In this document: piece after piece, positions 1,501-39,913 of the stretch
Position numbering within the stretch: position 1 is the first letter of the stretch
Layout of the letters: every line of letters starts with the position of its first letter
Made by a program: the position numbers and the translations under genes
Source: Pecten maximus
Taxonomy: Eukaryota
Length of the DNA: 64,000 bases
Assembly: GCF_902652985.1 (NCBI RefSeq)
Contig: NC_047017.1
Location: 28,582,001-28,646,000, forward strand
Direction: 5' to 3'
Notes under the pieces: generated by a model
What the model was told of the DNA's origin: nothing
Databases searched by the model: none
The model's input: the letters and a program-made list of their open reading frames with translations, nothing else

Positions 1501-4500
1501 CACATTTTCTTCTGTCTTCTGCATTCGAGAATCAAGGAATAACAATCTGAAAAAAGAACGAGAATATATAGGGTAAGTATTTTGGATAGATTTAAAATAT
1601 CACTTAAGCTATTGTGTTAATTTATAATCATGTCATACGCTGATTTTGCCTTATCGTCTGTTTCAAATTCCATTTATCATCTTATTTATCATTCAACTAC
1701 ATTATTCCGTTTGAAAATATTCTTAAAGGAGGGAAACAAAGCGAATTAAAACACTTTTCTATGCCCTATATTCTACCAGTCACCATTCTAAACTTAGGTA
1801 GCGTCTTTGTTCTTTTGTAATGAGAGCTTTCTTCTTTTCCCAAGAAAGGCGAACGGTAATATAAGTACATAGTATTAGTTGTGAACTTTACGGAAACATA
1901 AAACATACAGGGCTCAGAAAATACACCGAAGATAACATCAATACAATGACACCATACTTTTCGAGTTTGGTGACCAGATCTTCCAACTGACTTTTGGCAA
2001 AACCATCGGGAAAAAACTTTACACCTCTGTTGGTTGATATGTTTTTAGTTTTCATCCTAAGCTGATTACATTAATTGAAGAGCGAACCAGACCAGGTAAA
2101 TGGGGACGGACTTGCAAAGTCCAATAATTTCACCTATAGGTATATTGTCGATGCATTATCTTTCAGTCACAAAACAAAAAACAAACAAAAAAACAAACAA
2201 AAAAAACCAAAACAAAAAACAAAAACAACAACAACACTTTATTTACCTTATCGATCATATATACCCTGTATAGTTTTAAATTGGGGACAGTGCATTCTTT
2301 ATTATCAGTCGCTTATCTCGTTATGAACTACATAACCAACAGGCACAGTTTAAACCTAAGCCATGTGATAAACGGGATGATTCATTTTAGATAGCAAAAT
2401 CCCTGCATCCCTCTACCTATGGTATTTACACGTCCTAGCTGATTCGATAATCAAAGATTTGTTCCCAATTCCACGATTTCCGTGACAGATGTCTAGAGAG
2501 GTTGATGAAGACGTTTTATGACCAAATTATGATTTCATTTGGAAATATTCTGTCCCATTATGTGAAATGATTTCAGACATGTTCTATGTTTGTTGATATG
2601 CCTGGCAGTTCTGTTGTCACCACCCTAACTCTCATTTAAGATTGTAACCCGGATTAGACCTAGATTTGTATGGCGGGTGTCGAGGAAGAAGTAGAAGACG
2701 CTTATTCTTCTTGGGCACCTGGTCTTATTCTCGTTGTACTTTTTAACCAGTCTCCACGCAACTCCACATTTTTTGTCGATATCTTTCATCGTTAAATCGA
2801 TTTTGAGGTTGAATCATGGTTTCGTTATTACGTCGGTATTATTTTGTGTATTTGATGAAACCTTATTATGCAGTCATATATTCATAAGATGGCGGATGAT
2901 TATGACAACAGGGCCAATAAATATATTTTTATTACCATTCTAAGTTGTGAAACGACAACTTCAATAAATATAAACATATTTTGATGAAATTTTGTATACA
3001 GCCTAATATCAGAAAGATATCGGATAAGTTCAACCATTCGACCAATCAGATCGTAACATATAGAGTTATTGCCATTTGCCCTTTCGTCATTCTCTGATCA
3101 TGTGATCATTACTTGAGTGAATATATAAATGGATTGTGATGAAATTTGGTATGCTGTGAGCTTTATACCAATAGAATCTTGAACAAATTCCGCATCGAGA
3201 TCAATCTGATCGTAGGAGCTATGGCCTTTTGCAGTTTATGTCTAGGTAATGTTGATCGTAAGAACTATGACCTTTTGCAGTTTATGTCTAGGTAATGTTG
3301 ATCGTAAGAACTATGACCTTTTGCAGTTTATGTCTAGGTAATGTTGATCGTAAGAACTATGACCTTTTGCAGTTTATGTCTACGTAATGTTGATCGTAAG
3401 AACTATGACCTTTTGCAGTTTATGTCTAGGTAATGTTGATCGTAAGAACTATGACCTTTTGCAGTTTATGTCTACGGTAATGTTGATCGTAAGAACTATG
3501 ACCTTTTGCAGTTTATGTCTAGGTAATGTTGATCGTAAGAACTATGACCTTTTGCAGTTTATGTCTAGGTAATGTTGATCGTAAGAACTATGACCTTTTG
3601 CAGTTTATGTCTAGGTAATGTTGATCGTAAGAACTATGACCTTTTGCAGTTTATGTCTAGGTAATGTTGATCGTAAGAGCTATGACCTTTTGCAGTTTAT
3701 GTCTAGATAATGTTGATCGTAAGAGCTATGACCTTTTGCAGTTTATGTCTAGGTAATGTTGATCGTAAGAGCTATGACCTTTTGCAGATTATGTCTGGGT
3801 AATGTTATTGGGCCATTACCATGCAGGGGATACTACCATGTCTTTTAAAATGAATGACCTTGACCTACTTTCAATGTCACCGGGATAAAAAGTTGAAAGT
3901 TTCAAAGAAATAAAATCATCTATCAAAGATAAAACTACCGATAAGTGCCATCGGTCTCCTGTTTGTAAACATTGTATATACCTACACGATAAGAACACCT
4001 GCTATCACGTTATAGCCAGCGAACAGAAGAAATGTGAAACCTCGGAACCAATCAACCGTCGCGGCATAGATGGCGTTGCCAGTCACGCTTCCCAAAACAG
4101 CACAGATAGTCTCTACAGCGGCCACGCCGGCAAACAGGGTACCTGTGTAGAAAGAAACGATATAGAACTATGTAGCATCTGTACTTTACTGCGCGATAGA
4201 TTTCATGTAACGAACTTGTCTGTCTATTTGAGCTTTATTGATGAGAAATTGTCATAAGAGTAACGTCTCTCGCCTTGGTTTTCATGAGGTACCAAGTGAC
4301 TAACGATTCTTGTCTTGTTCCTGAGGTGCCACATAAATAAAGATACTTGCCTTATTGTTTACAAAGTATCACGTGACTAGCGATATCTACCTTGCTGTTC
4401 TGGGGTGTCACATGACTAACGAAATGTACTATGTTGTTCTGGAAGTGTCACGTGACTAACGAAATTTACTAAGTCCTGGAAATGCCATGTGACTAACGAT

Positions 4501-24747: not shown

Positions 24748-27700
24748 ATGGACGACGTATTAACTCTCATTTTGTTATCATTTGCCATGCTTGTTGGATG
24801 TTACCTAGCTGGTATGATCCCGATTGCGATAACATTTTCAGAGGTAAGTCGCTTCCAGCTGTGTTGGTTCGCAATTGTGCACTGAGAAACTGGTGATCGG
24901 TACCGGTTGTCCCTATCAGGTACACGTACCACTCGTCAGTCTACTACTGGTTACCTTCTTCCATGTATAACAATACCTGGTTCATTTGAGATATGGATTT
25001 TTGGAGATTTTTTCAAGTCTGTTGGATATATTGGGCGGTCCTCTGGTGAAAGTGTCTGGTTGTCACATCAGATTCATGAATCATATAAATACTGATAACC
25101 TCTTTCTACAGCAATTTTATAATAACCAATTTGAGGTATATCTTTGTTGCTAAAATTCTCCTAAATAACTTACAACTTAACTTTAAAAAAAATCCGTCCA
25201 AGTCGTATATATTTAAAAAAATATCTTAATTAAAGAGCTGAAATCATATAATTGTCAAGTTGATAATAATAATAATATATCCTTTTTTTGTGACTGGTAT
25301 AGAGACTTTATATAGAAGTCCTGAACCGGAAATAAACTTATATTGTCTGATTTTATTTAGTGATGAAACATCAGACAAATGCAAAAATAAAAATTATTTG
25401 AACATTGAAAAGTACCAAAAATTGAAAAAAGAAGAGAAAAAGTTTTGAAGTAAACAGTGCTTGGCCTATAATATGTGAGTTTTAGAGCTGTGTATCGCAA
25501 AGTGGGTAGCGATACGATTCATATCGCGGTACAGGGGTCACAATACGATTCATATCACGATATATGAGAAGCTGATGACCTATCAAATATCTGATGTTCC
25601 ATCTCTTACAGTTGTCATGTTTTGTTTGTGGTATTTTCTGAATATTAGAGTCCCACAAAGCATTCTTGAATTAAGATAATTTGGATTTGAAAGAATTCCA
25701 ACTGGCAGCTTTATATGCCGCTAGAACGACCTTGTCAGCCATGTTGCAATTGTTTACTACAAAACGTAAGCTAACGTTGGTCAAGGGAGATAACTACAAA
25801 TTTTCAAGTATCGCGATATAAATAAAGGACAGACTATACATCAATTCACCACTCTGCGATCCAATACATTGATGCATCTGTGAATCGTTACACCACTAGT
25901 GAGTTTGCTTATCATACGCAAGCTGGCATTTTCCCCCAACCTTTTGTGCCATCTAATATAATTATTATCTACTATATGGATTAGTGTTGTACTGAATTTT
26001 CAGAGTTTTTAGTTATACAGTATACTATATACATATGTACACTTGTAATTATATCGCTACCTTTTGTCCACAACAGTTATGGCCGCACGGTATAACAAGG
26101 GTGGCGATAGTATCAAATTGTGAAAATAACAACTATGGAATTGTAAAAGAGACTGCATTTCAAACGTTTTTTTAAATGCAAGTTTGAATATATATAGTTA
26201 ATATTGTCACAAATGTTTGATTATCAAAACCTTCTGTCCATGATCTATTAGTGTGTGGTTTTGTTTTGGAGTTTCCATCTCAACTGATGTAGCCAAATGT
26301 TCATACCACATATACACAATAAGCATACAAAGTGAGTTTGAAATCTGTCATGTTTTTATTACAAACAAAATCATAAGTGTCAGGTGTGACATAATAGAAA
26401 TATCCGATTATTGATCTACCTGAGCGAAAAAGCATCAAGCTAATTTACCTGTGCAATTTACAAGTGAAAACGGGAGATAACCTTAGTCTATAAATTAAAC
26501 ACTAAAGAGTTCCTTGATCACCAAAACCAGAACAAAATAGCAATGTTGTTAAGGAAGATATAAAGCGATTGGGAACGTTTGTATTGTAACAAACATGGTG
26601 GATGATATGGGGGTATGTGAGTGTGGCAAACTTAAAGCCACATACTCCCAAAGAAATGTTTACATTTCGAGCTCTTTACAGTTTTCAGACTTTAATAGTA
26701 TATACGGTACCTAACAAATTATCGTGAATCAAAAACTGAAAATGTGTATTTATGAAAGTATACGGGAAATTCCCAAAAATTATAACTGGGTCAGACAGAC
26801 CAAGTTTCTATGCGAAATAGTCCCATAACGCAACGGCGGGTTATCAGTCTATACATAATGGCGGAACGCTGAATGCGTGAGCCTGCCAAAACACACACAA
26901 GATTCTGCCAAAAAGAAACGTACAAGGGTCTGGAATCGGCAGAACCCGAGTACATTTGTATTTCCTTAGGTTGTATGCATATTGCTACATTTTGAAATTA
27001 AGGTATTTGGATGTATGTTTGTTTATTATTTTGTTCAGTAATTATATATAATTACGCAAATATTCTGTTAATGTTTGAATGAAGCTTTATTAGGCAAAGT
27101 TCACGTATACACTGTACTCGAAATAATGTAAACAACGGCCATGCATGTGTGTAGTTTATTTTCAGTGCACGTTGTTATAGCCTTGTTCTTGGCCCTAGCT
27201 GTGACAAATCTCGCGATAAAAATAACTGCGACAAGTTATTTCTATACACTGATGTCTCAAGGATTCCCGTGGTCTAACATCCAGGCAGCCTCATCAGTGA
27301 GGCTAGTGGTCATTTTAATGTTAGGAGAGCGTGAATGAGCATCTTGGATAGCCATTAATACATGTGTGCAACAAGAATTTTATGCTATTTGGGTGTATGT
27401 GTCTTCAACGCGGGAATTATATAGGAGGGTCAAGGGTACACTAGTGTTTAGCTCACCTGCCTGAAGGGCAAGTGAGCCTATGCCTTTGTGATCATGAGGC
27501 ATTCGTCGTCCGTCGGGCATCAACATTTCCATTTAAACAACAACTTCTCAATAACCAATTGCAAGAGGCTTGTAGCATGCTGGGATGAAGGGCTACCAAG
27601 TTTGTTCAAAAGAATGACATTGGCCAACATTCAAGGTCACATGGGTCAAGTAGACTAAGTAGACTGATATTTTTAAATGACTTTTTCTCAATAACCAAGA

Positions 27701-30700
27701 GGCCCAGTGATCAGATATGGGTCTGTAGCATGCTGGAGTGAAGCCAGGGCTAGCAAGTTTGTTCAAATGAATGACCTTGACCTTTATTCAAAGTCACAGG
27801 GGTCAAATCTGCTACTTCCTCGAAATAACCAAATGGTCCAGATAATCTATAATCTCAAGTTAGTGGGAAGTTTTGTTTACTTTTTATCTAGGTCAGATAA
27901 CAAAACACAAGGATGTGAGGCACCCATTATTTTAGTGTGACCATATGCTCAGTGATATGTTAAACATGTCAAGGTTTCTTGAAGTTAATATGTCAATATG
28001 TGGTAGTGATATGGTGACAAATATTGAGCTATATAAAGCTGATGATGAATTATCTATTACAGATAAGCTGATCATGACAGTCTCAGAAAGATCAGTTTTA
28101 ATATGCATACATGTACATGTATATACACGTATATGTCTAATCTAAACTTTATATTGTGCTTTAAGTATTTGCTGAATTAAATAACGGATCTTTAAAAACT
28201 GTGTATATATTAAATATGATGAAATGATGTACATATGCATGTAGAACATATATATAAAAGAGACAGAGACTGGATTAATTAGTTTATATTTTAATATTGA
28301 AGTTTGACCAATAAGATGTGAAATCTTAATATTTGCTTTTAACCAAAATTTGATCATATATACAATATAGCTATTTAATTTTATTGTTTGAAAATGAATT
28401 TGACTGAAGTTTCATAAGACTAAGCTTCATGAATAATGATGTTTGCATGAATGATACATGTCGTCCAGATTTGTCTTCACAATTTTATGTAAATTATAGA
28501 TATATATACATGTACATATATATATATGCTGATGATCTGGGTGATTGAACCTTTCCAAATAATTATTTCTGACAGAATTTATCATTCCCAAGAACCATAC
28601 TATATACCTGACCATCGTTGAGAGTTTGTAAGAATTATGACTCTATATAGTATAAACATGTACAGTAATAGAATAAGAACCATTATCATTCATCAACATT
28701 TTGCTCTGTTGCAGGAAAAGTTGAAGCTCATCACAGTATTTGGAGCAGGTCTCCTGGTTGGAACAGCTCTGGCTGTCATCATCCCTGAGGGGATCCATGC
28801 CATGAGTGAATCCAGTGCTGGTAATTATATATATATATAATCACTGTCAAACATCCTCTCGTCATATACATGTATTTCATATACAGCTTAAAATAACGAC
28901 CATAATAGAAAATTTATTTAAACTATTGATGACAATCCAACTTCAGCCAATGTGGATGCTATTACTATAAGTAATTGGTACCGGTGATTGTCATATACAT
29001 GTGTAGTTGGACTTCCCTTTGTTGAACACAGGAATGATATTAAATGAAATCATGCCAGTCATCATTTGTTTCCAATCATTTGACCTCACAATATTTATAT
29101 TTTTGTATACAGATATGAACTTGTGTGTAAATTATCAAGTTCAGAAGTGAAGTAACCTGTGCTGTAGTAGGGAAATGGAAAACATCACATTGATATATTT
29201 GTGCTTGCACAGAAATATTGTCTGGATCTAAAAATATTTTAGTAGAAACTTGATTTTCTGTGATATGTTACAGTCCATTTATATCATTAGAAAGTGCTTG
29301 CAGACTTTACAAATTCACAATCAATTCAGAGGCTAAAAACATTAGTATAGATTCATGATCGAAGAAACACTACATTTTGTATTAATTTGATTTTTATTTA
29401 CATCCAAGATGCACACAGTCATGAAGTTGTACACAGTGAAGTACCAAACAAAGAGGAAGGTGCACACACGGGGGATGACCACGCCCACAGCCACACCCAC
29501 AGTGTCTCTGACAACCACACTATCATAGGGGTGACACTAGTGGCAGGATTCATCTTCATGTTACTGGTCGACCAGATTGGTGGAGGACATACACATGTAT
29601 CTACAGGTGTGTATATATGGGGTCAGAGACTAGAGAAGTTGAGTAGAGATTTACCTCTACTGATGCTGTATCTATATTTTGTTTACTAATGTAAGAGTAC
29701 CTGTATATAATTTGCTTGAAGTGTTAGCGTTAAGCTAATTGTCACTTTTCCATCAACAAAAATTTTGACAATATATATTTTCAAGAGTAAAGCACTGAAG
29801 GTTAGACCGAAAGCTATTAAGAAATTGAGAAGATACTAGGTCAGGAGGTAGTGTATTCAATTTTGATGTGACTGTATGGAAGATGGAGAATTTGCAAAGG
29901 TGGGTTCAGGAGTGGGGATTCTGATAATAGATAAGAGAGTTGATATAGAGTATTTGGTCTGTTGTAACTGTAATGTCATGATGAAGATATTTGTTTATGG
30001 TTACCATATTGTGGGTAGGTTTCTACATCATGGTATAATGCACATCCTTGCATAGATCTGTCAGTGAACTTGTTATAACATGTCACTAATGTTTCAAGGT
30101 GTTGTGATAGTGACAAATCTACCAGCTCAACATGGTACTGTATCAAATTTTATGTAAGGATTCCACACAGAGCAAGCATATTCTAAAATTGGATACACTA
30201 GCTGTGACTTTTATGTTTGTTCTCTGATATTTTTCAAATTTACTTTGAAGTTGTGTGAATAAAACCTTAGGTTTTGTTAGCCTTGTCACATACCCGGTAA
30301 CCAGGTATATTCATGAATGTTTCTTTGCTTGTTTAATCCTACATTATCCTGTGTATGCTTTTACCTCCAGAAAAAGGTACTGGTAAGGTCTTTGATACAA
30401 CAATTTATCTGCTTTATTTAATAATAATAATAATGCTTTGAATGTTCTGAATCAGAATTATCATATACCCAGCTATCATCGTGTAAACTAATTATGTAAT
30501 ATTAATATTACCTTACCTGTATTACAATTCAGATAATTTATAGCAATTTCTTGAAAAGTACTGGAGGTATATTCCTTAAACTTCACATGTAGATTCTCCT
30601 TGGTCCTTTCTTGTGCCCATGGAATTATGAGTCTTATTGAGAAAACGAGATGGTCGATAGCCACCCATCTTGGAATTTGACTGTCAAAGTTTGTAATCAG

Positions 30701-33700
30701 TATATATATTTCTTGGAAAATACTGGAGGGTTAATATGAAGTTTCTCTTTGGCCCCAATGAATTTTCAGGAAAACAAGGTGGTGACAAGCAGCCATCTTG
30801 GATTTTGGCAGTTAAAATTTTGTTACTGATTCCTTTTAGATAGCTCTTATAGGATCTTTCTTAGACAGCATATGTATATTCCACATGTTATCAAAATATT
30901 TCAGATTTAGAAGAAGAGGGGAAAGAAGGGAAAAGTAGAGAGAAAAAAAATAAGTCTTTCATAGGACTGACATAAATCATTCAGTGGTGGTTGCCAGTAT
31001 CCCTCTGGGATCTCTTTTATGTTTTGCTAATTAAGCAACATTTTCACTTTTATGTATATTTTTTTTTAGCTTATTGATTTATTTCTAAGTGATTTCTTCT
31101 CTCTCTCTCTCTTTTTGTCAAGTGTTTTCCTTTTGTAGAGCACATGCTTGCTACAGTAACCATTAACAAATTCAACAGGATTATTGGGTAGATGCCAGTG
31201 TAAAAATAAATCAAATTTGAAATTAGAGGACACTTAAGTTGACAAATATAATTGTGTAAATTTGATTTGGTTTGGTTTGCTTTTAGTTTTGTTTAACAGC
31301 TTTTCAGCAATTAAGGTCAGTTAAGGATGGCCTCCCCTTTGTGCGAGATACATGCATCAGGCTTATGCGTGTGCATTGTAGGAGGCTGCATCGGGCTTAT
31401 GCGTGTGCATTGTAGGAGGCTGCATCGGGCTTATGCGTGTGCATTGTAGGAGGCTGCAGTATGTTGATGATTGTCTCTTTGTAATAGCACAGAACTGATG
31501 CAAACTTTATAGTGCTACCTCATTAAAGCAAGCTGCCAAGGACACCTAGCAGGACACCCCATTCGGTCACATTATGCTGAGGTGCAAACCAATTGTCCCA
31601 CTCCCAAAATGCTGAGTACTAAGCAGGGGAAGCAACTACCATTTGAAATTGTGTGGAGAGACGTTTTGTTTTTCAGTGTAAAGCAGAATGCTTTTGTGTA
31701 AAGCAGAATGCTTTCTTCTCTCAGCAATATAACTACTTTGTAGAATTCAGCATTCATTTGAGCTGATTGAATACTATACTTATGTAGGTTGTGGAATGAA
31801 TCTGTCATATTATTTTATAAATCAAATTTAGCCTGGGGTTGGGCATATGTAATCAATTTATATGATTCTTGCTTGAGTGGTTATCCCACTATCCATCACT
31901 ATGATCAACAACACAGATTGAATTTTTATAGTGGAGATATTTTGATTGCACACATATATCACAGACCAAATGTTGACTGTTTTAATGAATTTTCTGATAG
32001 AGATCTGGAATAGTCTCACTGTAAGGTTAAGGTTTGTAGCTGTAATTTCATGAATATAATCTTTTATGCTCTTTAAAATATTTTTCTGAGCAATGCTTTA
32101 CACAAGAGGCAGAGCTCAAACAGAAAAATATTTCCTTGTTTTTTGCAATTAATGAAAAATAGTTTGCCATGAATATATATACTTCTCCATTATCAGAAAT
32201 GTAAGGGCATGCATAGATTAACAATTTTTATAGGACTTCTACCGGTACTTACAATCAAGGTTTTTTTATGGTTTCACTTCTAAAGGCTCTACATTAAGTT
32301 TAATTGTACATTATCTCTTTGTAGATGCGGAGGCTAACGGAGCAGGGTCGGCAATCCAACAAAACCGTCATAAGATTACTGCCACACTGGGTCTGGTGGT
32401 ACATGCTGCAGGTACACACTCTTTATTATTGAAGTTGATACCTTACTGATATAAGCCCCTGTATCTTGGCCTTGCCAACACTTGGTCTGTTGGTACATGC
32501 TACATATACTCTCTTTATTATTGAAGTTAATTTTCCTTTACAGTAATTAAGCCCCTGTAGATAGTTATCAATCTGTATTATCAAGCGGAGATGTTTGGTT
32601 GTTTTTGGAAAAAAATACTATAATTTTAGTGAATTTTGTAGTTTGTTTAAAACTCACTATACTGACAAATAAGGACACATTTTGAGCTACTCAAGCCCAT
32701 GAAAATTTCTCTAGGCCAAGTGAATTTCTCTAGACCATGCAAGTTACTATAGGGTATGCAAGTTTCACGAGGTCAAGTGAACTTCTCTAGACCATGCAAG
32801 ACATTCTAGGATATGTAAGTTTCACTAGGTCAGGAGAGTTACTGTAGGCCACATAAGTTACTCTAGGCCATGTGAATTACTTTAGGCCATGTGAGTTACT
32901 TGAGGCCATGTGAGTTACTTTAGGCCATGTCAGTGACTCTAGGCCATGTGGGTTACTCTAGGCCATGTGAATTACTTTAGGCCATGCGAGTTACTCTAGG
33001 CCATGTGAGTTACTCTAGGCCATGTGAGTTACTTTAGGCCATTTGAGTTACTCTAGGCCATGTGAGTTACTCTAGGCTATGTGAGTTACTTTAGGCCATG
33101 TGAGTTACTTTAGGCCATGTGAGTTACTCTAGGCCATGTGAATTACTTTAGGCCATGTGAATTACTCTAGGCCATGTGAGTTACTTTAGGCCATGTGAGT
33201 TACTCTAGGCCATGTGAATTACTTTAGGCCATGTGAGTTACTCTAGGCCATGTGAATTACTTTTGGCCATGTGAGTTACTCTAGGCCATGTGAGTTACTC
33301 TAGGCCATGTGAGTTACTCTAGGCCATGTGAGTTACTTTAGGCCATGTGAGTTACTTTAGGCCATGTGAGTTACTCTAGGCCATGTGAATTACTTTAGGC
33401 CATGTGAATTACTCTAGGCCATGTGAGTTACTTTAGGCCATGTTAATTACTTTAGGCCATGTGAGTTACATTAGGCCATGTGAGTTACTTTAGGCCATGT
33501 GAATTACTTTAGGCCATGTGAATTACTTTAGGCCATGTGAATTAAATTAGGCCAGGTGAGTTACTCTAGGCCATGTGAGTTACTTTAGGCCATGTGAATT
33601 ACTTTGGGTCATGTGCATTACTTTAGGCCATGTGAGTTACTCTAGGCCATGTGAATTACTTTAGGCCATGTGAGTTACTCTAGGCCATGTGAGTTACTTT

Positions 33701-36627
33701 AGGCCATGTGAGTTACTCTAGGCCATGTGAATTACTTTAGGCCATGTGAAGTTACTCTAGGCCATGTGAGTTACTCTAGGCCATGTGAGTTACTCTAGGC
33801 CATGTGAGTTACTCTAGGCCATGTGAGTTACTCTAGGCCATGTGAGTTACTTTAGGCCATGTGAGTTACTTTAGGCCATGTGAGTTACTCTAGGCCATGT
33901 GAATTACTTTAGGCCATGTGAGTTACTTTAGGCTATGTGAGTTACTTTAGGTCATGTGAATTACTTTAGGCCATGTGAATTACTTTAGGCCATGTGAGTT
34001 ACTTTAGGCCATGTGAGTTACTTTAGGCCATGTGAATTACTCTTCATCATGTTACTAGTACATGTAGTTAGTCTAAGCTATCAGAGTTATTCTAGGCCTT
34101 GTGAGTTTCTCTATGCCTTATGAGTTTCTCTAGGCCCTGTGAGTTTTTCTAGGCCTTGTGAGTTTCTCTATGCAATGTTAGTTTCATTGTCATGTACTGT
34201 CTGTATTTGTAGCTGATGGTGTTGCTATGGGGGCAGCTATTATGATGCAGCGATCCCACCTGACCCTGATCGTTTTTATAGCCATCATGTTACATAAGGT
34301 AAGCGATTTGATAGCCGTCATGTTACATAAGGTAAGCGATTTGATAGCCGTCATGTTACATAAGGTAAGCGATTTGATAGCCATCATGTTACATAAGGTA
34401 AGCGATTTGATAGCCATCATGTTACATAAGGTAAGCGATTTGATAGCCGTCATGTTACATAAGGTAAGCGATTTGATAGCCGTCATGTTACATAAGGTAA
34501 GCGATTTGATAGCCGTCATGTTACATAAGGTAAGTGATTTGATAGCCATCATGTTACATAAGGTAAGCGATTTGATAGCCGTCATGTTACATAAGGTAAG
34601 CGATTTGATAGCCGTCATGTTACATAAGGTAAGCGATTTGATAGCCGTCATGTTACATAAGGTAAGCGATTTGATAGCCGTCATGTTACATAAGGTAAGC
34701 GATTTGATAGCCGTCATGTTACATAAGGTAAGCGATTTGATAGCCGTCATGTTACATAAGGTAAGCGATTTGATAGCCGTCATGTTACATAAGGTAAGCG
34801 ATTTGATAGCCGTCATGTTACATAAGGTAAGCGATTTGATAGCCGTCATGTTACATAAGGTAAGCGATTTGATAGCCGTCATGTTACATAAGGTAAGCGA
34901 TTTGATAGCCGTCATGTTACATAAGGTAAGCGATTTGATAGCCGTCATGTTACATAAGGTAAGCGATTTGATAGCCGTCATGTTACATAAGGTAAGCGAT
35001 TTGATAGCCGTCATGTTACATAAGGTAAGCGATTTGATAGCCGTCATGTTACATAAGGTAAGCGATTTGATAGCCGTCATGTTACATAAGGTAAGCGATT
35101 TGATAGCCGTCATGTTACATAAGGTAAGCGATTTGATAGCCGTCATGTTACATAAGGTAAGCGATTTGATAGCCGTCATGTTACATAAGGTAAGCGATTT
35201 GATAGCCGTCATGTTACATAAGGTAAGCGATTTGATAGCCGTCATGTTACATAAGGTAAGCGATTTGATAGCCGTCATGTTACATAAGGTAAGCGATTTG
35301 ATAGCCGTCATGTTACATAAGGTAAGCGATTTGATAGCCGTCATGTTACATAAGGTAAGCGATTTGATAGCCGTCATGTTACATAAGGTAAGCGATTTGA
35401 TAGTCGTCATGTTACATAAGGTAAGCGATTGGAGTTCTAGACTTAAGATACACTGTATTGAAGATCTAAAGATTCTTTAATCACGTATTTAACTTAAATA
35501 ACTTGACTACATAAATAAGTCTACAGTATTCACTAGATACATTTTTTTTTGTATTTATCTCCTGATACAACTAATACAACTGTATTTATTTTCAGGCACC
35601 TGCTGCGTTTGGTTTGGTCACCTTTCTATTACATGATGGTTTTGATCGCCCGAGGATACGAAGACATCTGTTAATATTTTCAGCATCAGCTCCAATTGCC
35701 TGTATTTTTACCTATGTCGGATTATCTGTCAGTCAGGTAAGACAATATAAACACTCGTAACTTCATCCGTTAGCTAGATACAATACTTGGAACTGTCTTA
35801 AATTCGAGCTATCAGCTAGCTAATATAGCTGTAACAGCTAAGAACAAGCCAGATTTGTGACAGAATTGTATTGATGGTTATATAGGGACGATAAAAGAGG
35901 GAGAAGATGGGCCTGTTTTATAATCACTCATGTCATTGGGATGACCTCATTACAAATATCTACTATTGTCTGGCATGCATTGTGCATAAAAGGGGACCAT
36001 TTTCAACTCCTCGGTAGCCATCACAAAATGTTTTGATAGGGCTTGTGGTAAGGATCTGAATCTGTACTGAAGAATAGTCTCAAATCACATGATCTTTAAC
36101 ATATGGTCATAACAGGCCACCTAGTGCAAAACACTATATGACTTTACTGATGTGTAACAGTTTGCTGAGACGTTAGCTTGCACACATGAGGCTGAGGCGA
36201 CTGAGATTTCACTAATGTTAGTAAAATGTGTACAAAATAAGTTGTTTGCTTTCATGCATTTATAATGACTGAAATTTTCATAGGTGCCAATAAGGTCCAT
36301 GGGCTATCATTTTATAAAAGTTGTGAACATATACAAAATGTAAAAGAGTCTTTTCATTAATATTTTCTTTTGTTATTTTAGGGCAGTTTAGGAAAACTTC
36401 ACAATTTTCAAACCACAGGAATTGCCATGCTATTTAGTGCTGGAACGTTTTTGTATGTGGCGACAGTACACGTCCTGCCAGAGGTGACCACACGTCATAC
36501 CAAACAGACAAATGCTGACAACACTGTAGTCATTCATGAACAGAAGGGATTCCGGCCGATTGACCTCGTGGCTATAGTGTCTGGGTCGGTGATACCCGTA
36601 TTGTTATCCTTTGGCCATAAACATTAA
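24748..36627 (+). CDS. SLC39A9: Zinc transporter ZIP9, 319 aa, 7 exons: 24748-24843, 28715-28820, 29409-29606, 32325-32411, 34213-34298, 35596-35736, 36382-36627
   Basis: [39 protein letters not shown], His-rich loop, [49 protein letters not shown]; all introns GT-AG with matching phases; total 960 nt. Confidence 0.96.
27447..27925 (-). mobile_element. Degenerate pearl/HINE-like element in ZIP9 intron 1
   Basis: TTTAGCTCACCTGCCTGAAGGGCAAGTGAGC terminal hairpin, CGTC microsatellite, internal repeats related to 15273-15932. Confidence 0.6.
29740..30290 (-). mobile_element. Old CR1/L2-like LINE relic in ZIP9 intron 3
   Basis: The minus strand at ~30155-30192 translates [13 protein letters not shown], a typical post-RT motif; otherwise decayed. 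Confidence 0.5.
30530..31017 (-). mobile_element. Older diverged copy of the 155-bp-repeat pearl/HINE-like family
   Basis: GCAGCCATCTTGGATTTTG and terminal ATCCCTCTGGGATCTCTT are shared with 38723-39913. Confidence 0.7.
31262..31640 (-). mobile_element. SINE-like body with an internal 34-bp tandem triplication (31350-31460)
   Basis: (AAACC)n-like tail on the minus strand and a GC-richer body typical of molluscan SINEs; head not recognised. Confidence 0.45.
32700..34165. repeat. 19-bp satellite (GCCATGTGAGTTACTYTAG) filling ZIP9 intron 4
   Basis: About 60 well-conserved units (32855-34040) with decayed flanks; ends about 50 bp before exon 5. Confidence 0.95.
34278..35430 (+). repeat. 33-bp tandem array of the ZIP9 exon-5 end plus splice donor (ATAGCCRTCATGTTACATAAG|GTAAGCGATTTG); 35 donors
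   Basis: GT donors every 33 bp from 34299 to 35421 (1122/33 = 34 extra units). Confidence 0.97.
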
Positions 36628-38722
36628 AACCCCACTACAGAGTCGGGAAACTTAATTGTGTGGTTTTAGTTTGATTCCAACTGCTAATGTTACAAAATTT
36701 ATTTAATTTGATGAAGCTATTTATTTCAAGTCAAGCACACTTTCAATGGTGCTGAAATTGACTTGATGTTGGAGCCTGCTCAGTCCTGTCTAGTGTTGTT
36801 GTCTAAATCTGTTTTTTTTTTTTATTGAATATTGGGCTAGAAATGTTCTGATTAGAAATTCAAATATGATAGCTTACTGAATATTTTAACATAACTTCAA
36901 TTTGGTTTAGTTTTCATCAATCAAATTATTAACCAGTGGACCAAACAAACAACAAGGAATATAAGATTTCATCTTTATATTATAATGTGTACAATGCAAC
37001 ATAGTTGGAATACGGGTTAGGGAGTTCCATTCTATGCCAGGGGACTGTTTTGGGTCCCTTTTTATCGACATATTGACAGGGCCAGCAGGTGAAAGCAAAG
37101 AATCATGAGATAGGGTTCTCAACCTCTGTAATAAGATTTCTAAGTTGCCAAACACTTAAGCCTCAGATGTGGCTAGTTGAGAATCTTTTCCCTCAGATTT
37201 GAGTTTTCTTTATACATGTTACCAAAAGTGGTGAAAAAATCTATTGATTTGTGTGTTAGGTACAATGTCATTTTTTTTTGTTATGTAAATCTACATTTAT
37301 ATATATTTTGTTTTAAATGAAAATCATTGTTTTAAACACAGGAATTTGGCAAAAATTTCCAGCCTACAATCTATATTTAATTTTGTATTACAGATATGGA
37401 CCATAGGTTGAGGATTTATGACAATCCCCTGTGTTTTTAAATACACATGTGAATTTTTTATACACATTTCAAAATCCATATCGGTCGTGTACATCATAAA
37501 AACATAGAATCCCTGGATGTCTCAATACTTTTTATTCACTGTTGTTTATCCAATTAAACTTTCTTTCTAAATTTTGTTTCTCAAAATAAAAAATTGATGA
37601 TCAATTTAATGAATCACCAAAAGATCATTGACCCAACTGGAGCAGACATTGATATTTATTCTAGTTCGGAAGTGTGCGGAAGTTATCCCAAATGCATTGT
37701 ACGTGTTATCAAATTCTTTTAAAATCAAATAATTGATGGAACATAAGACTGTGACAAAATACTCGTTTGATATTCATCAAGTCTTAAGAGACTTTACAAA
37801 AAAGTAAAGGCATTATATGTATTGTAGCCTGTTAACTGATGGACAGGTTGTAATCAGCCTGGCAGGCATCATGTGGTGTTACCTACAACACTTACTGTAG
37901 TATCACCATGTTAATTGTAATGTTTGTGATAGTTGTCTGCTGATTATTGATCTTGGTGTAGGATTGATATTATTGATAGTGCTTTGTTTGACCATTGTAA
38001 GGTAGAGATGGATTGGAAAAGAAGTTTATTTCATAGCGATTTTCCTGTATTCAGAAGGAAGCACATAAAAAGTTGCAAATAGAATCACTTGTTGAGAAAT
38101 GACTTAAATATTATGTAATGTTTAAATGTTTGTGACAATCCACACAACTACATGTGTATTGCTGTGAGGACTACACAGTAATATAACATTATCATATGAT
38201 GCTGGTGACATTATGAACTGGAATGAATTAAATCTGTATTATTCTGACAACACTCATGTTTAAGGTAGGTGTACATGTGTTTTGAATGAGGAATCTTTGT
38301 TGGTGTTATTTTGATATTTAATGACTGTTTTCCCGCCCCACTAAATGTAGGTTAGACTTGATATGGAATCATTGCTGGAGAGTCTTCCTTCCCTATAATG
38401 ACGTTATATAGTGTATCCCTATGGTGTCATATAACAACATTATGTGGTGAGATATAGAATCTTCAACTTACATTTTGACAGGTTTTCAAATAAAAATAAG
38501 GAGGAAAAAATTGAATGTATACAGCCATGATGTTGTGACATTTTCAACTGATGACTTAACCTCATTGTCCATATTATGTCTCATGATTTCTGACTGGCAC
38601 AGCCAAAGGAAATCTCTCTATGGTATATGATACTTGTGAGATCTGAGAAAATATTTCAAGGGGACATTCACTGGATAAGTGCTCAACTGTTATATTGGAA
38701 GTTAAGACTGAAAGTATCACCA

Positions 38723-39913
38723 TTTTTAGCCCACCATCATCAGATGGTGCGCTATTCAAATCGCCCTGCGTCCGTGGTCCGTGGTCCGTCCGTCCCCCCG
38801 TCCGTCCGTCCCTCCGTCCGTAAACAATTCTTGTTATCGCTATTTCTGAGAAAGTACTGAAGGGATCTTTCTCAAATTTCATATGTAGGTTCCCCTTGGT
38901 GCCTAGTTATGCATATTGCGTTTTGAGACCAATCAGAAAACAACATGGCCGACAGGCAGCCATCTTGGATTTTGACAATTGAAGTTTGTTATCGCTATTT
39001 CTGAGAATGTACTGAATGGATCTTTCTGAAATTTCATATGTAAGTTTCCCTTGGTGCCTAGTTATGCATATTGCGTTTTGAGACCAATAAGAAAACAACA
39101 TGGCCGACAGGCAGCCATCTTGGATTTTGACAATTGAAGTTTGTTATCGCTATTTCTGAGAAAGGACTGAAGGGATCTTTCTCAAATTTCATATGTAGGT
39201 TCCCCTTGGTGCCTAGTTATGCATATTGCGTTTTGAGACCAATAAGAAAACAACATGGCCGACAGGCAGCCATCTTGGATTTTGACAATTGAAGTTTGTT
39301 ATCACTATTTCTGAGAAAGTATATAGGGGATCTTTCTGAAATTTCATATGTAGGTTTCCCTTGGTGCCTAGTTATGCATATTGCGTTTTGAGACCAATCA
39401 GATAACAACATGGCCGACAGGCAGCCATCTTGGATTTTGACAATTGAAGTTTGTTATCGCTATTTCTGAGAATGTAATGAATGGATCTTTCTCAAATTTC
39501 ATATGGAGGTTCCCCTTGGTGCCTCGTTATGCTAATTGCATTTTGAGATCAATTGGAAAACAATATGGCCAACAGACCGCCATCTTGGATTTTGACAATT
39601 GAAGTTTGTTATCTCTATTTCTCAAAGTACTGAAGGGATCTTTCTCAAATTTCATAAGTAGGTTCCCCTTGGTCCCTTGTGTTGCATTTTTGGACCAGTC
39701 TGTCCTCAAAACAACCTGGCAAACAAACAGCCATCGTTAAATCTCAAATTTCTTATATAGCTAGGATTCCCTTATTTGAAAAGTACTGGAGGGGTGTCTC
39801 AATTTGCACAGATTAGTAAAATGAAGGGAAAAGTAGAGAAAAGATCAATCTGACATGGAACCTATGAAGATCATTCAATGGTGGGCGCCAAGATCCCTCT
39901 GGGATCTCTTGTT
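38723..39913 (-). mobile_element. Non-autonomous pearl/HINE-like element with ~155-bp internal repeats, copy 2 (more intact)
   Basis: Terminal hairpin GCCCACCATCATCAGATGGTGCGC, (CGTC)n microsatellite, about 6 tandem 155-bp units; the other end is the reverse complement of 12617-12720. Confidence 0.85.

Follow-up and report, generated by a model that had tools for sequence, protein, structure and literature searches.

How does splicing proceed when a single exon end offers 35 equally strong donor sites in the same reading frame? The question is raised by the zinc transporter gene ZIP9 (SLC39A9) of the king scallop Pecten maximus, which lies in a stretch of 64,000 nucleotides of contig NC_047017.1 (assembly GCF_902652985.1, positions 28,582,001 to 28,646,000 of the forward strand); we refer to this stretch as the window and give all positions in its own numbering. 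A 33-bp unit straddling the donor of ZIP9 exon 5 is repeated there 34 more times, and each copy brings the donor with it. A preliminary description of the locus had seen two possible consequences: either the spliceosome reliably picks the first of the donors, or the length of the array tunes the dosage of functional ZIP9. RNA contigs and RefSeq models speak for the first of these, and nothing was found in favor of dosage tuning by array length. We consider it probable (about 0.85) that the array is a young, locus-specific minisatellite in intron 5, in which the first donor is used and the copies are silent pseudo-sites.

Structure of the Array at the Exon 5 Boundary

The array was delimited by Tandem Repeats Finder (TRF) at 34274-35430 (period 33, 35.1 copies, 99% matches, no indels). 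Its monomer 0 is made up of the last 21 nt of exon 5 and the first 12 nt of the intron, and 34 more monomers follow head to tail; counted from the donor, these are 34 full units of GTAAGCGATTTGATAGCCGTCATGTTACATAAG or a variant differing by 1-2 nt, with 30/34 identical. The deviating units are those at 34365 and 34398, which bear the exon-type GCCATC instead of GCCGTC, the one at 34530, which combines GTAAGT with GCCATC, and the final one (unit 34, at 35388), which shows a C>T change (AGTCGTC). A 35th GTAAGC at 35421 is followed by unique intron. Thirty-four of the 35 donors read AAG/GTAAGC (AAGGTAAGC; here and below a slash marks a splice junction), and one reads AAG/GTAAGT (AAGGTAAGT); the latter, donor 8 (34529/34530), is a perfect match to the consensus. 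We ourselves count 7 contiguous pairs between the donor and U1.

All 35 donors are phase 0, and the exon frame is stop-free over 1122 nt, as compared with 102 stops in frame +2 and 35 in frame +3 across the array. The unit comprises 11 codons, with I replacing V in three units. This anatomy agrees with the preliminary description, whose assignment to ZIP9 exon 5, division of the unit into 21 nt of exon and 12 nt of intron, and count of 35 equal, phase-0 and stop-free donors were confirmed by TRF, in-register reading, RefSeq and Pfam; its arithmetic for the longest conceivable product (319 + 34 x 11 = 693 amino acids, aa) also holds.

The 22-nt core of the unit occurs 35 times in the window and not once in 100 shuffles. 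A search of the whole Pecten maximus assembly (918,306,378 bp, 3,983 scaffolds) with the complete unit, allowing up to 3 mismatches, returned 34 matches, all at the ZIP9 locus, and none with the reversed control. An origin as a dispersed repeat or as part of a transposon is ruled out by this distribution (34/34 genomic matches at ZIP9); since the unit is confined to the ZIP9 locus, the array must have been born there.

Donor Use in RNA and Proteins

Evidence from RNA and DNA was taken from assembled Logan contigs, which were placed on positions 35091-38800 (the last 10 units, exons 6 and 7 and the 3' untranslated region, UTR), the exon 5 side being read from the loose ends of contigs only. Three RNA runs from three studies (X6, X9 and X11) yielded contigs of 2833, 2950 and 1466 nt, respectively, which span the exon 6/exon 7 joint (35736/36382) and extend over the 3' UTR. 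In the X9 and X11 contigs the unique exon 5 sequence TGATTGTTTTTATAGCCATCATGTTACATA (...GTTTTTATAGCCATCATGTTACATA) abuts exon 6, and the X6 contig likewise reaches 173 nt past exon 6. A splice from donor 1 gives ...GTTTTTATAGCCATCATGTTACATAAG onto GCACCTGCT, as opposed to a unit spliced to exon 6, which would give GATTTGATAGCCGTCATGTTACATAAG, i.e., ...GATTTGATAGCC(G/A)TCATGTTACATAAG onto GCACCTGCT. No unit joined to 35596, the start of exon 6, was present in the contigs of X6, X9 and X11, and the mRNA contigs are unbranched through the exon 5/6 junction. At the level of contigs, the first of 35 equally strong donors is shown to be the one used in mRNA.

Protein records give the same answer. 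The RefSeq isoforms X2, X3 and X4 all read IAIMLHK/APAAFGL across the junction, which corresponds to donor 1, and among these three recovered isoforms RefSeq models no donor variant at exon 5. The RefSeq pipeline is evidently able to see small donor variants in ZIP9, since it models variants 6 nt apart at a micro-exon of the same gene. Likewise, when 5.8 billion proteins were searched with exon 5 and three units as the query, none bearing a unit came up. The ladder of 35 isoforms that had been envisaged for this locus is therefore not supported, with donor 1 alone in the RNA contigs of three studies and in three RefSeq isoforms and no unit-to-exon-6 joint.

Words of the unit do occur in the RNA runs, in 63-nt closed-cycle contigs with depths of 15.7, 4.8 and 2.0; the mRNA stands at 44.2, 19.9 and 6.55, respectively. 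Divided among ~30 copies, the unit depth amounts to ~1% of mRNA depth per copy, less than the 7% of a piece of intron 6 in X6, and the unit words in the RNA runs can be accounted for by unspliced RNA. If evenly used downstream donors were instead the source of all unit depth, they would by our own arithmetic account for at most ~2% of transcripts.

Two further features of the RNA contigs concern the same region. The mRNA contigs of X9 and X11 carry a synonymous C>T change at 34271 in exon 5 (ATC to ATT, Ile). In X9, a contig of depth ~8 lies on unique intron 5 at ~35463-35554 and leaves the reference at 35554 for 255 unlike letters; it may be an insertion allele, or unspliced RNA of another haplotype.

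The Array in Other Animals

A DNA run from another sample and another study (run X4) contains a unit contig of depth 395, compared with 31-33 for the single-copy flanks (~12x), and its contigs of unique intron begin at 35428, directly after the array. The 63-nt closed-cycle contig, which needs unit-to-unit junctions, was recovered in each of the three RNA samples. The array exists in at least four further samples (four studies). The unit contig of the DNA run is 61 nt long, whereas a closed 33-nt cycle would give 63 nt, and this difference implies that the animal has a second type of unit. The main unit stands at ~12x as against 30 identical units in the reference, contig depth not being a genotype; animals probably differ in copy number or composition.

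Origin of the Array and Openness of Its Frame

A likely ancestral boundary can be assembled from the post-array sequence (GTAAGCGATT/GGAGTTC) and the exon (...TTTTTATAGCC...). Tandem duplication of 33 nt of it, from TTATAGCC... to ...GCGATT, accounts for the observed unit apart from one substitution (T>G), and a later G-type change (I to V) marks the unit that expanded. Microhomology at the breakpoint is just 2-5 nt (CGTTT vs CGATT). The preliminary description had taken a resemblance between exon and unit to suggest that slippage seeded the array, an argument that is weakened by the fact that the GATAG part of this resemblance is copied exon, leaving the 2-5 nt. Variant copies lie at the edges of the array, namely the exon copy and unit 34.

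We suggest that the process started when a 33-bp segment lying across the exon 5 donor was duplicated in tandem, and that slippage or unequal exchange would then have produced the 34 extra, near-identical units, with 34 in-frame repetitions of the strong donor AAG/GTAAGC as a by-product. Splicing takes the authentic donor 1, and the copies leave with the intron, which measures 1297 nt if donor 1 is used. Donor 1 would presumably win by position, either through exon definition across the 86-nt exon 5, which would pair the exon 5 acceptor with the first donor downstream, or through the 5'-to-3' order of appearance. The array itself would have no function of its own.

That the ladder is open and in frame is not surprising in itself. 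Of the 33 nt of the unit, 21 come from the coding part of the exon and keep its reading frame. The chance that the period is a multiple of 3 is ~1/3, and the chance that the four intron-derived codons contain no stop is ~0.83, which gives ~0.28 for an open, in-frame unit. Selection keeping the frame open was considered and, given this chance, rejected as unnecessary.

Alternative Readings of the Ladder

Several points weigh against the view that the copies are entirely silent. Because contigs drop rare variants, downstream donors used at less than ~5-10% would go unnoticed; the sample consists of three RNA runs of unknown tissue, in the form of assembled contigs, and the mapped stretch held only the last 10 units of the array. 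RefSeq isoform X1 was not recovered, though any exon 5 version of 221-703 aa would be expected to appear in the protein search. Donor 8, with its GTAAGT, matches the consensus perfectly, and in human F7 only pseudo-sites with a perfect consensus could attract splicing (PMC1557585). According to the same paper, IFI6 and CBS use the two nearest pseudo-sites constitutively.

These points bear most directly on a low, constitutive leakage to donor 2 and perhaps donor 3, which would yield ZIP9 with 11 or 22 extra residues in transmembrane helix 5 (TM5), most likely non-functional. We judge such leakage to be unlikely but a serious candidate, and at that strength it is compatible with a silent array as a minor addition. 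IFI6 and CBS behave in this way, the scallop donors, identical copies with 7 contiguous U1 pairs, are strong, and in-frame products would escape nonsense-mediated decay (NMD); contigs, which cannot show absence, would accommodate donor 2 use of a few percent. Yet the three RNA runs contain no unit-to-exon-6 joint and no branch at exon 5/6, RefSeq has the 6-nt variants of the micro-exon and none at exon 5, and exon 5 plus a unit is absent from 5.8 billion proteins. If low-level downstream use were true, the locus would be a natural assay of 5' splice-site choice among 35 sites in a mollusc, including the perfect-consensus donor 8. It is improbable that such use, at a low but real level and combined with length variation, would amount to an NMD-immune, in-frame ladder of defective ZIP9 and to a heritable dosage modifier scaling with copy number.

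A functional ladder, with many of the 35 donors in use, or a tuner, with array length setting the share of functional ZIP9 in a heritable manner, we regard as very unlikely. In its favor, no unit interrupts the frame, all donors are phase 0, and the contig depth of another animal points to a copy number or composition unlike that of the reference; but an open frame is expected by chance (~0.28), the dominant mRNA uses donor 1 in 3/3 runs, and the unit words per copy are at the level of pre-mRNA, with evenly used donors limited to ~2% of transcripts or less. The position of the insert is a further objection. The motifs HAAAD and MLHK are invariant among scallop ZIP9 sequences in an alignment of isoforms and orthologs, and their ligands align with human H155, D159 and H185, which are predicted to form the M1 metal site of human ZIP9 in a preprint based on AlphaFold3 modeling; the earlier assignment of the MLHK His as a metal-site residue is consistent with that model, in which H185 is an M1 ligand. 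Eleven residues including D and K beside this TM5 metal-binding His should wreck the transporter, and leaky products would therefore be waste, not tuning.

U1 bound at unused sites can influence nearby splicing and polyadenylation. From this general knowledge one may construct a role for the array as an intronic U1-binding platform, in which 34 donors would recruit U1 small nuclear ribonucleoprotein and, without being spliced, help to define exon 5 or block premature cleavage. Exon 5 is indeed correctly spliced despite two flanking arrays of splice-like motifs; scallop orthologs, however, encode identical exon 5/6 peptides with no sign of needing such a device, units so nearly identical suggest a recent neutral expansion and not a conserved element, and the genome is rich in minisatellites (15-24% of sampled DNA), so that we give this role very little credence. 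That the array or its length was made by the assembler is hardly credible: 30 identical 33-nt units are hard to polish, and the reference length is that of the assembly, but words spanning two units were found in four further samples, each from a different study, one of them DNA at ~12x single-copy depth, and the assembly is curated and PacBio-based, with a 1.2-kb array well within read length.

Gene Model and Identity

The gene has 7 coding exons and an optional micro-exon on the + strand at 24748-36627, as established from homologs and RefSeq isoforms (Table 1). Exons were searched singly, and full-length comparisons were made with RefSeq proteins, which back exon 5, exon 6 and the identity of the gene at 98-100% identity. 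The corresponding records are the Pecten maximus "zinc transporter ZIP9-B-like" isoforms X2, X3 and X4 of 323, 321 and 319 aa. Isoforms X4, X3 and X2 differ only by the micro-exon in intron 3 (+EK and +EKGT in the latter two, respectively), whose two donors lie 6 nt apart and are both modeled by RefSeq. With the Pfam Zip profile (PF02535), P0151 scores 129.1 bits against a cut-off of 35.1, and exons 5, 6 and 7 cover profile positions 192-216, 218-257 and 270-299. The best protein matches are ZIP9 of scallops, an ark clam and starfish, and a PDB sequence search with the scallop ZIP9 gave no match, even at E = 10.

Table 1. Coordinates of ZIP9 exons and repeat arrays in the window.
Feature	Position	Strand	Evidence and remarks
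ZIP9 exon 1, coding part	24748..24843	+	Start codon 24748; 3' end approximate; tblastn with RefSeq isoforms P0160/P0161, residues 1-32, 100%
ZIP9 exon 2	28712..28819	+	Ends approximate; tblastn, residues 32-67, 97%
ZIP9 exon 3	29408..29606	+	5' end approximate; donor CAG/GTGTGT; tblastn, residues 68-133, 100%
Optional micro-exon, 6 or 12 nt	30371..30382	+	cag acceptor; AAAAAG/GTACTG/GTAAGG; isoform alignment (+EK or +EKGT)
ZIP9 exon 4	32325..32411	+	Ends ...HAAA; donor CAG/GTACAC; tblastn, 100%
Unrelated 19-bp minisatellite, 71 copies, intron 4	32836..34183	+	TRF; ends 30 nt before exon 5 acceptor
ZIP9 exon 5, 86 nt	34213..34298	+	Donor AAG/GTAAGC at 34298/34299; Pfam Zip, RefSeq proteins, RNA contig loose ends
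34 full 33-nt units = 34 phase-0 pseudo-donors	34299..35420	+	All intronic if donor 1 is used
Final incomplete unit GTAAGCGATT plus unique 3' portion of intron 5	35421..35595	+	Acceptor ttttcag
ZIP9 exon 6	35596..35736	+	Starts APAAFGL; donor CAG/GTAAGA; Pfam Zip 218-257; RNA contigs
ZIP9 last exon (exon 7)	36382..38728	+	Coding to 36624; TAA 36625-36627; 3' UTR to ~38728 (RNA contigs); tblastn, 100%

Other Repeats in the Window, the Genome and ZIP9 Relatives

The 19-bp unit of the intron 4 array, ...CAT/GTGAGTTACTTTAG/GCCAT..., holds a donor-like GTGAGT, present in 40 exact copies, and after it an acceptor-like YTYTAGG, present in 60. Together with the 33-bp array, these motifs flank exon 5 on both sides with splice-like sequence, and yet the exon is correctly spliced. 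Elsewhere in the window, at 3207-3806, a 46-bp array of 13 copies (97% identity) carries an acceptor-like TTTTGCAG and, 11 nt on, a donor-like AG/GTAATG; from its motifs it may be another splice-junction-derived repeat.

Minisatellites were also counted in a genome sample of 20 x 10 kb (L009-L028) spread over G000:C2, taking arrays with a period of 10-150, at least 4 copies and at least 80% matches. There were 47 arrays, making up 24% of the 200-kb sample, and 14 in the window, making up 15% of it; the genome paper gives 0.99% simple repeats and 16.7% unclassified repeats. A strong donor motif was found in 2/47 sampled arrays compared with ~0.75 expected and 0 in the reversed control, this being a small sample of 200 kb. 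The two are a 34-bp unit with GAAG/GTAAGA (L015:1264-1484) and an 83-bp unit with GTG/GTGAGT (L023:1226-1644).

Repeated segments are seen in two further ZIP9 records. The model of the Argopecten irradians ZIP9-like isoform X2 (P0152, 260 aa) begins inside a 29-aa unit, of which it has ~2.6 copies; this unit consists of the end of exon 3 plus GKC, fitting read-through of a GGTAAGTGC-like donor. Judging by the protein sequence, Argopecten ZIP9 seems to have a boundary-spanning repeat of its own at a different exon, which was included in the gene model. A vertebrate-like ZIP9 fragment (P0001, 312 aa) has a TM4-TM5 block of ~75 residues (DGVALGAA...VGLSQ) twice in tandem, probably through mis-assembly or mis-modeling in the source record.

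Arrays of this kind matter for annotation, as predictors may read through those with an open frame, and the bay scallop RefSeq model of ZIP9 appears to include repeated exon-end units. The ZIP9 array is also a mutational hazard for a conserved metal-binding helix, since exchange between a unit and the exon copy would bring I-to-V and F-to-L changes.

Comparison with Known Boundary Repeats

Boundary-spanning minisatellites with silent pseudo-donors are already described in human genes and in amphioxus, and the scallop array involves no new mechanism. The closest parallel is the 37-bp variable number tandem repeat in intron 7 of F7, with 5-9 monomers, of which only the most upstream site is used, and for which mutagenesis showed "oriented scanning" (Borensztajn et al., 2006; PMC1557585). 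As in ZIP9, the first monomer of the F7 repeat spans the exon-intron boundary, and the authentic donor, which is the one used, is followed by identical pseudo-donors; the length of the scallop array is likely to be polymorphic between animals. The F7 repeat differs in having 37-bp monomers with 4 nt exonic, a weak donor (TGG/GTGGGT) and pseudo-sites that mostly shift the frame, whereas the scallop offers 35 strong donors, all in frame, with 21 nt of each unit coding. In F7, the pseudo-sites work once the first site is mutated.

Other human examples, as summarized in the same paper, fall on both sides (PMC1557585). IFI6 (6-16), with 25 pseudo-sites in intron 2 of which the two nearest are used, and CBS, with 15-20 monomers in intron 13 and two pseudo-sites used, resemble the scallop gene in their long ladders of reiterated donors but, in that account, use the nearest two pseudo-sites constitutively, while none was seen in use in the scallop contigs or recovered RefSeq models. 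In LMNB2 (100-bp x 10-15) and PDGF (81-bp x 16-18), the donor is repeated and the authentic one alone used, as in the scallop, with longer monomers, fewer copies and a vertebrate setting as the differences.

The "mirage" minisatellites of amphioxus, in Adh3 and the globins BflGb6 and BflGb9, leave regular splicing undisturbed and undergo concerted evolution inside the array, with edge copies escaping homogenization (Ebner et al., 2010; PMC3087553). The scallop array likewise has its variant copies at both ends (exon copy and unit 34). The globin mirages consist of 3-6 units of ~150-160 bp with 81-100% identity, some of them at acceptors, in contrast to 34 short units with >99% identity in ZIP9. 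Finally, as in NAGNAG acceptors and GYNGYN donors, of which the ZIP9 micro-exon is a real example, in-frame sites compete at one exon end; however, sites of that kind are overlapping or adjacent and are jointly used, whereas successive donors of exon 5 lie 33 nt apart and none but the first is seen in use.

The notable trait that distinguishes the scallop case from these systems is the presence of 35 strong donors, all in frame. With equal donors placed 33 nt apart, ZIP9 provides a clean natural case of the first-donor rule in a lophotrochozoan and a convenient minigene substrate. The rule had rested on mutagenesis in one human gene, and the scallop adds the same observation for a distant animal and for strong donors.

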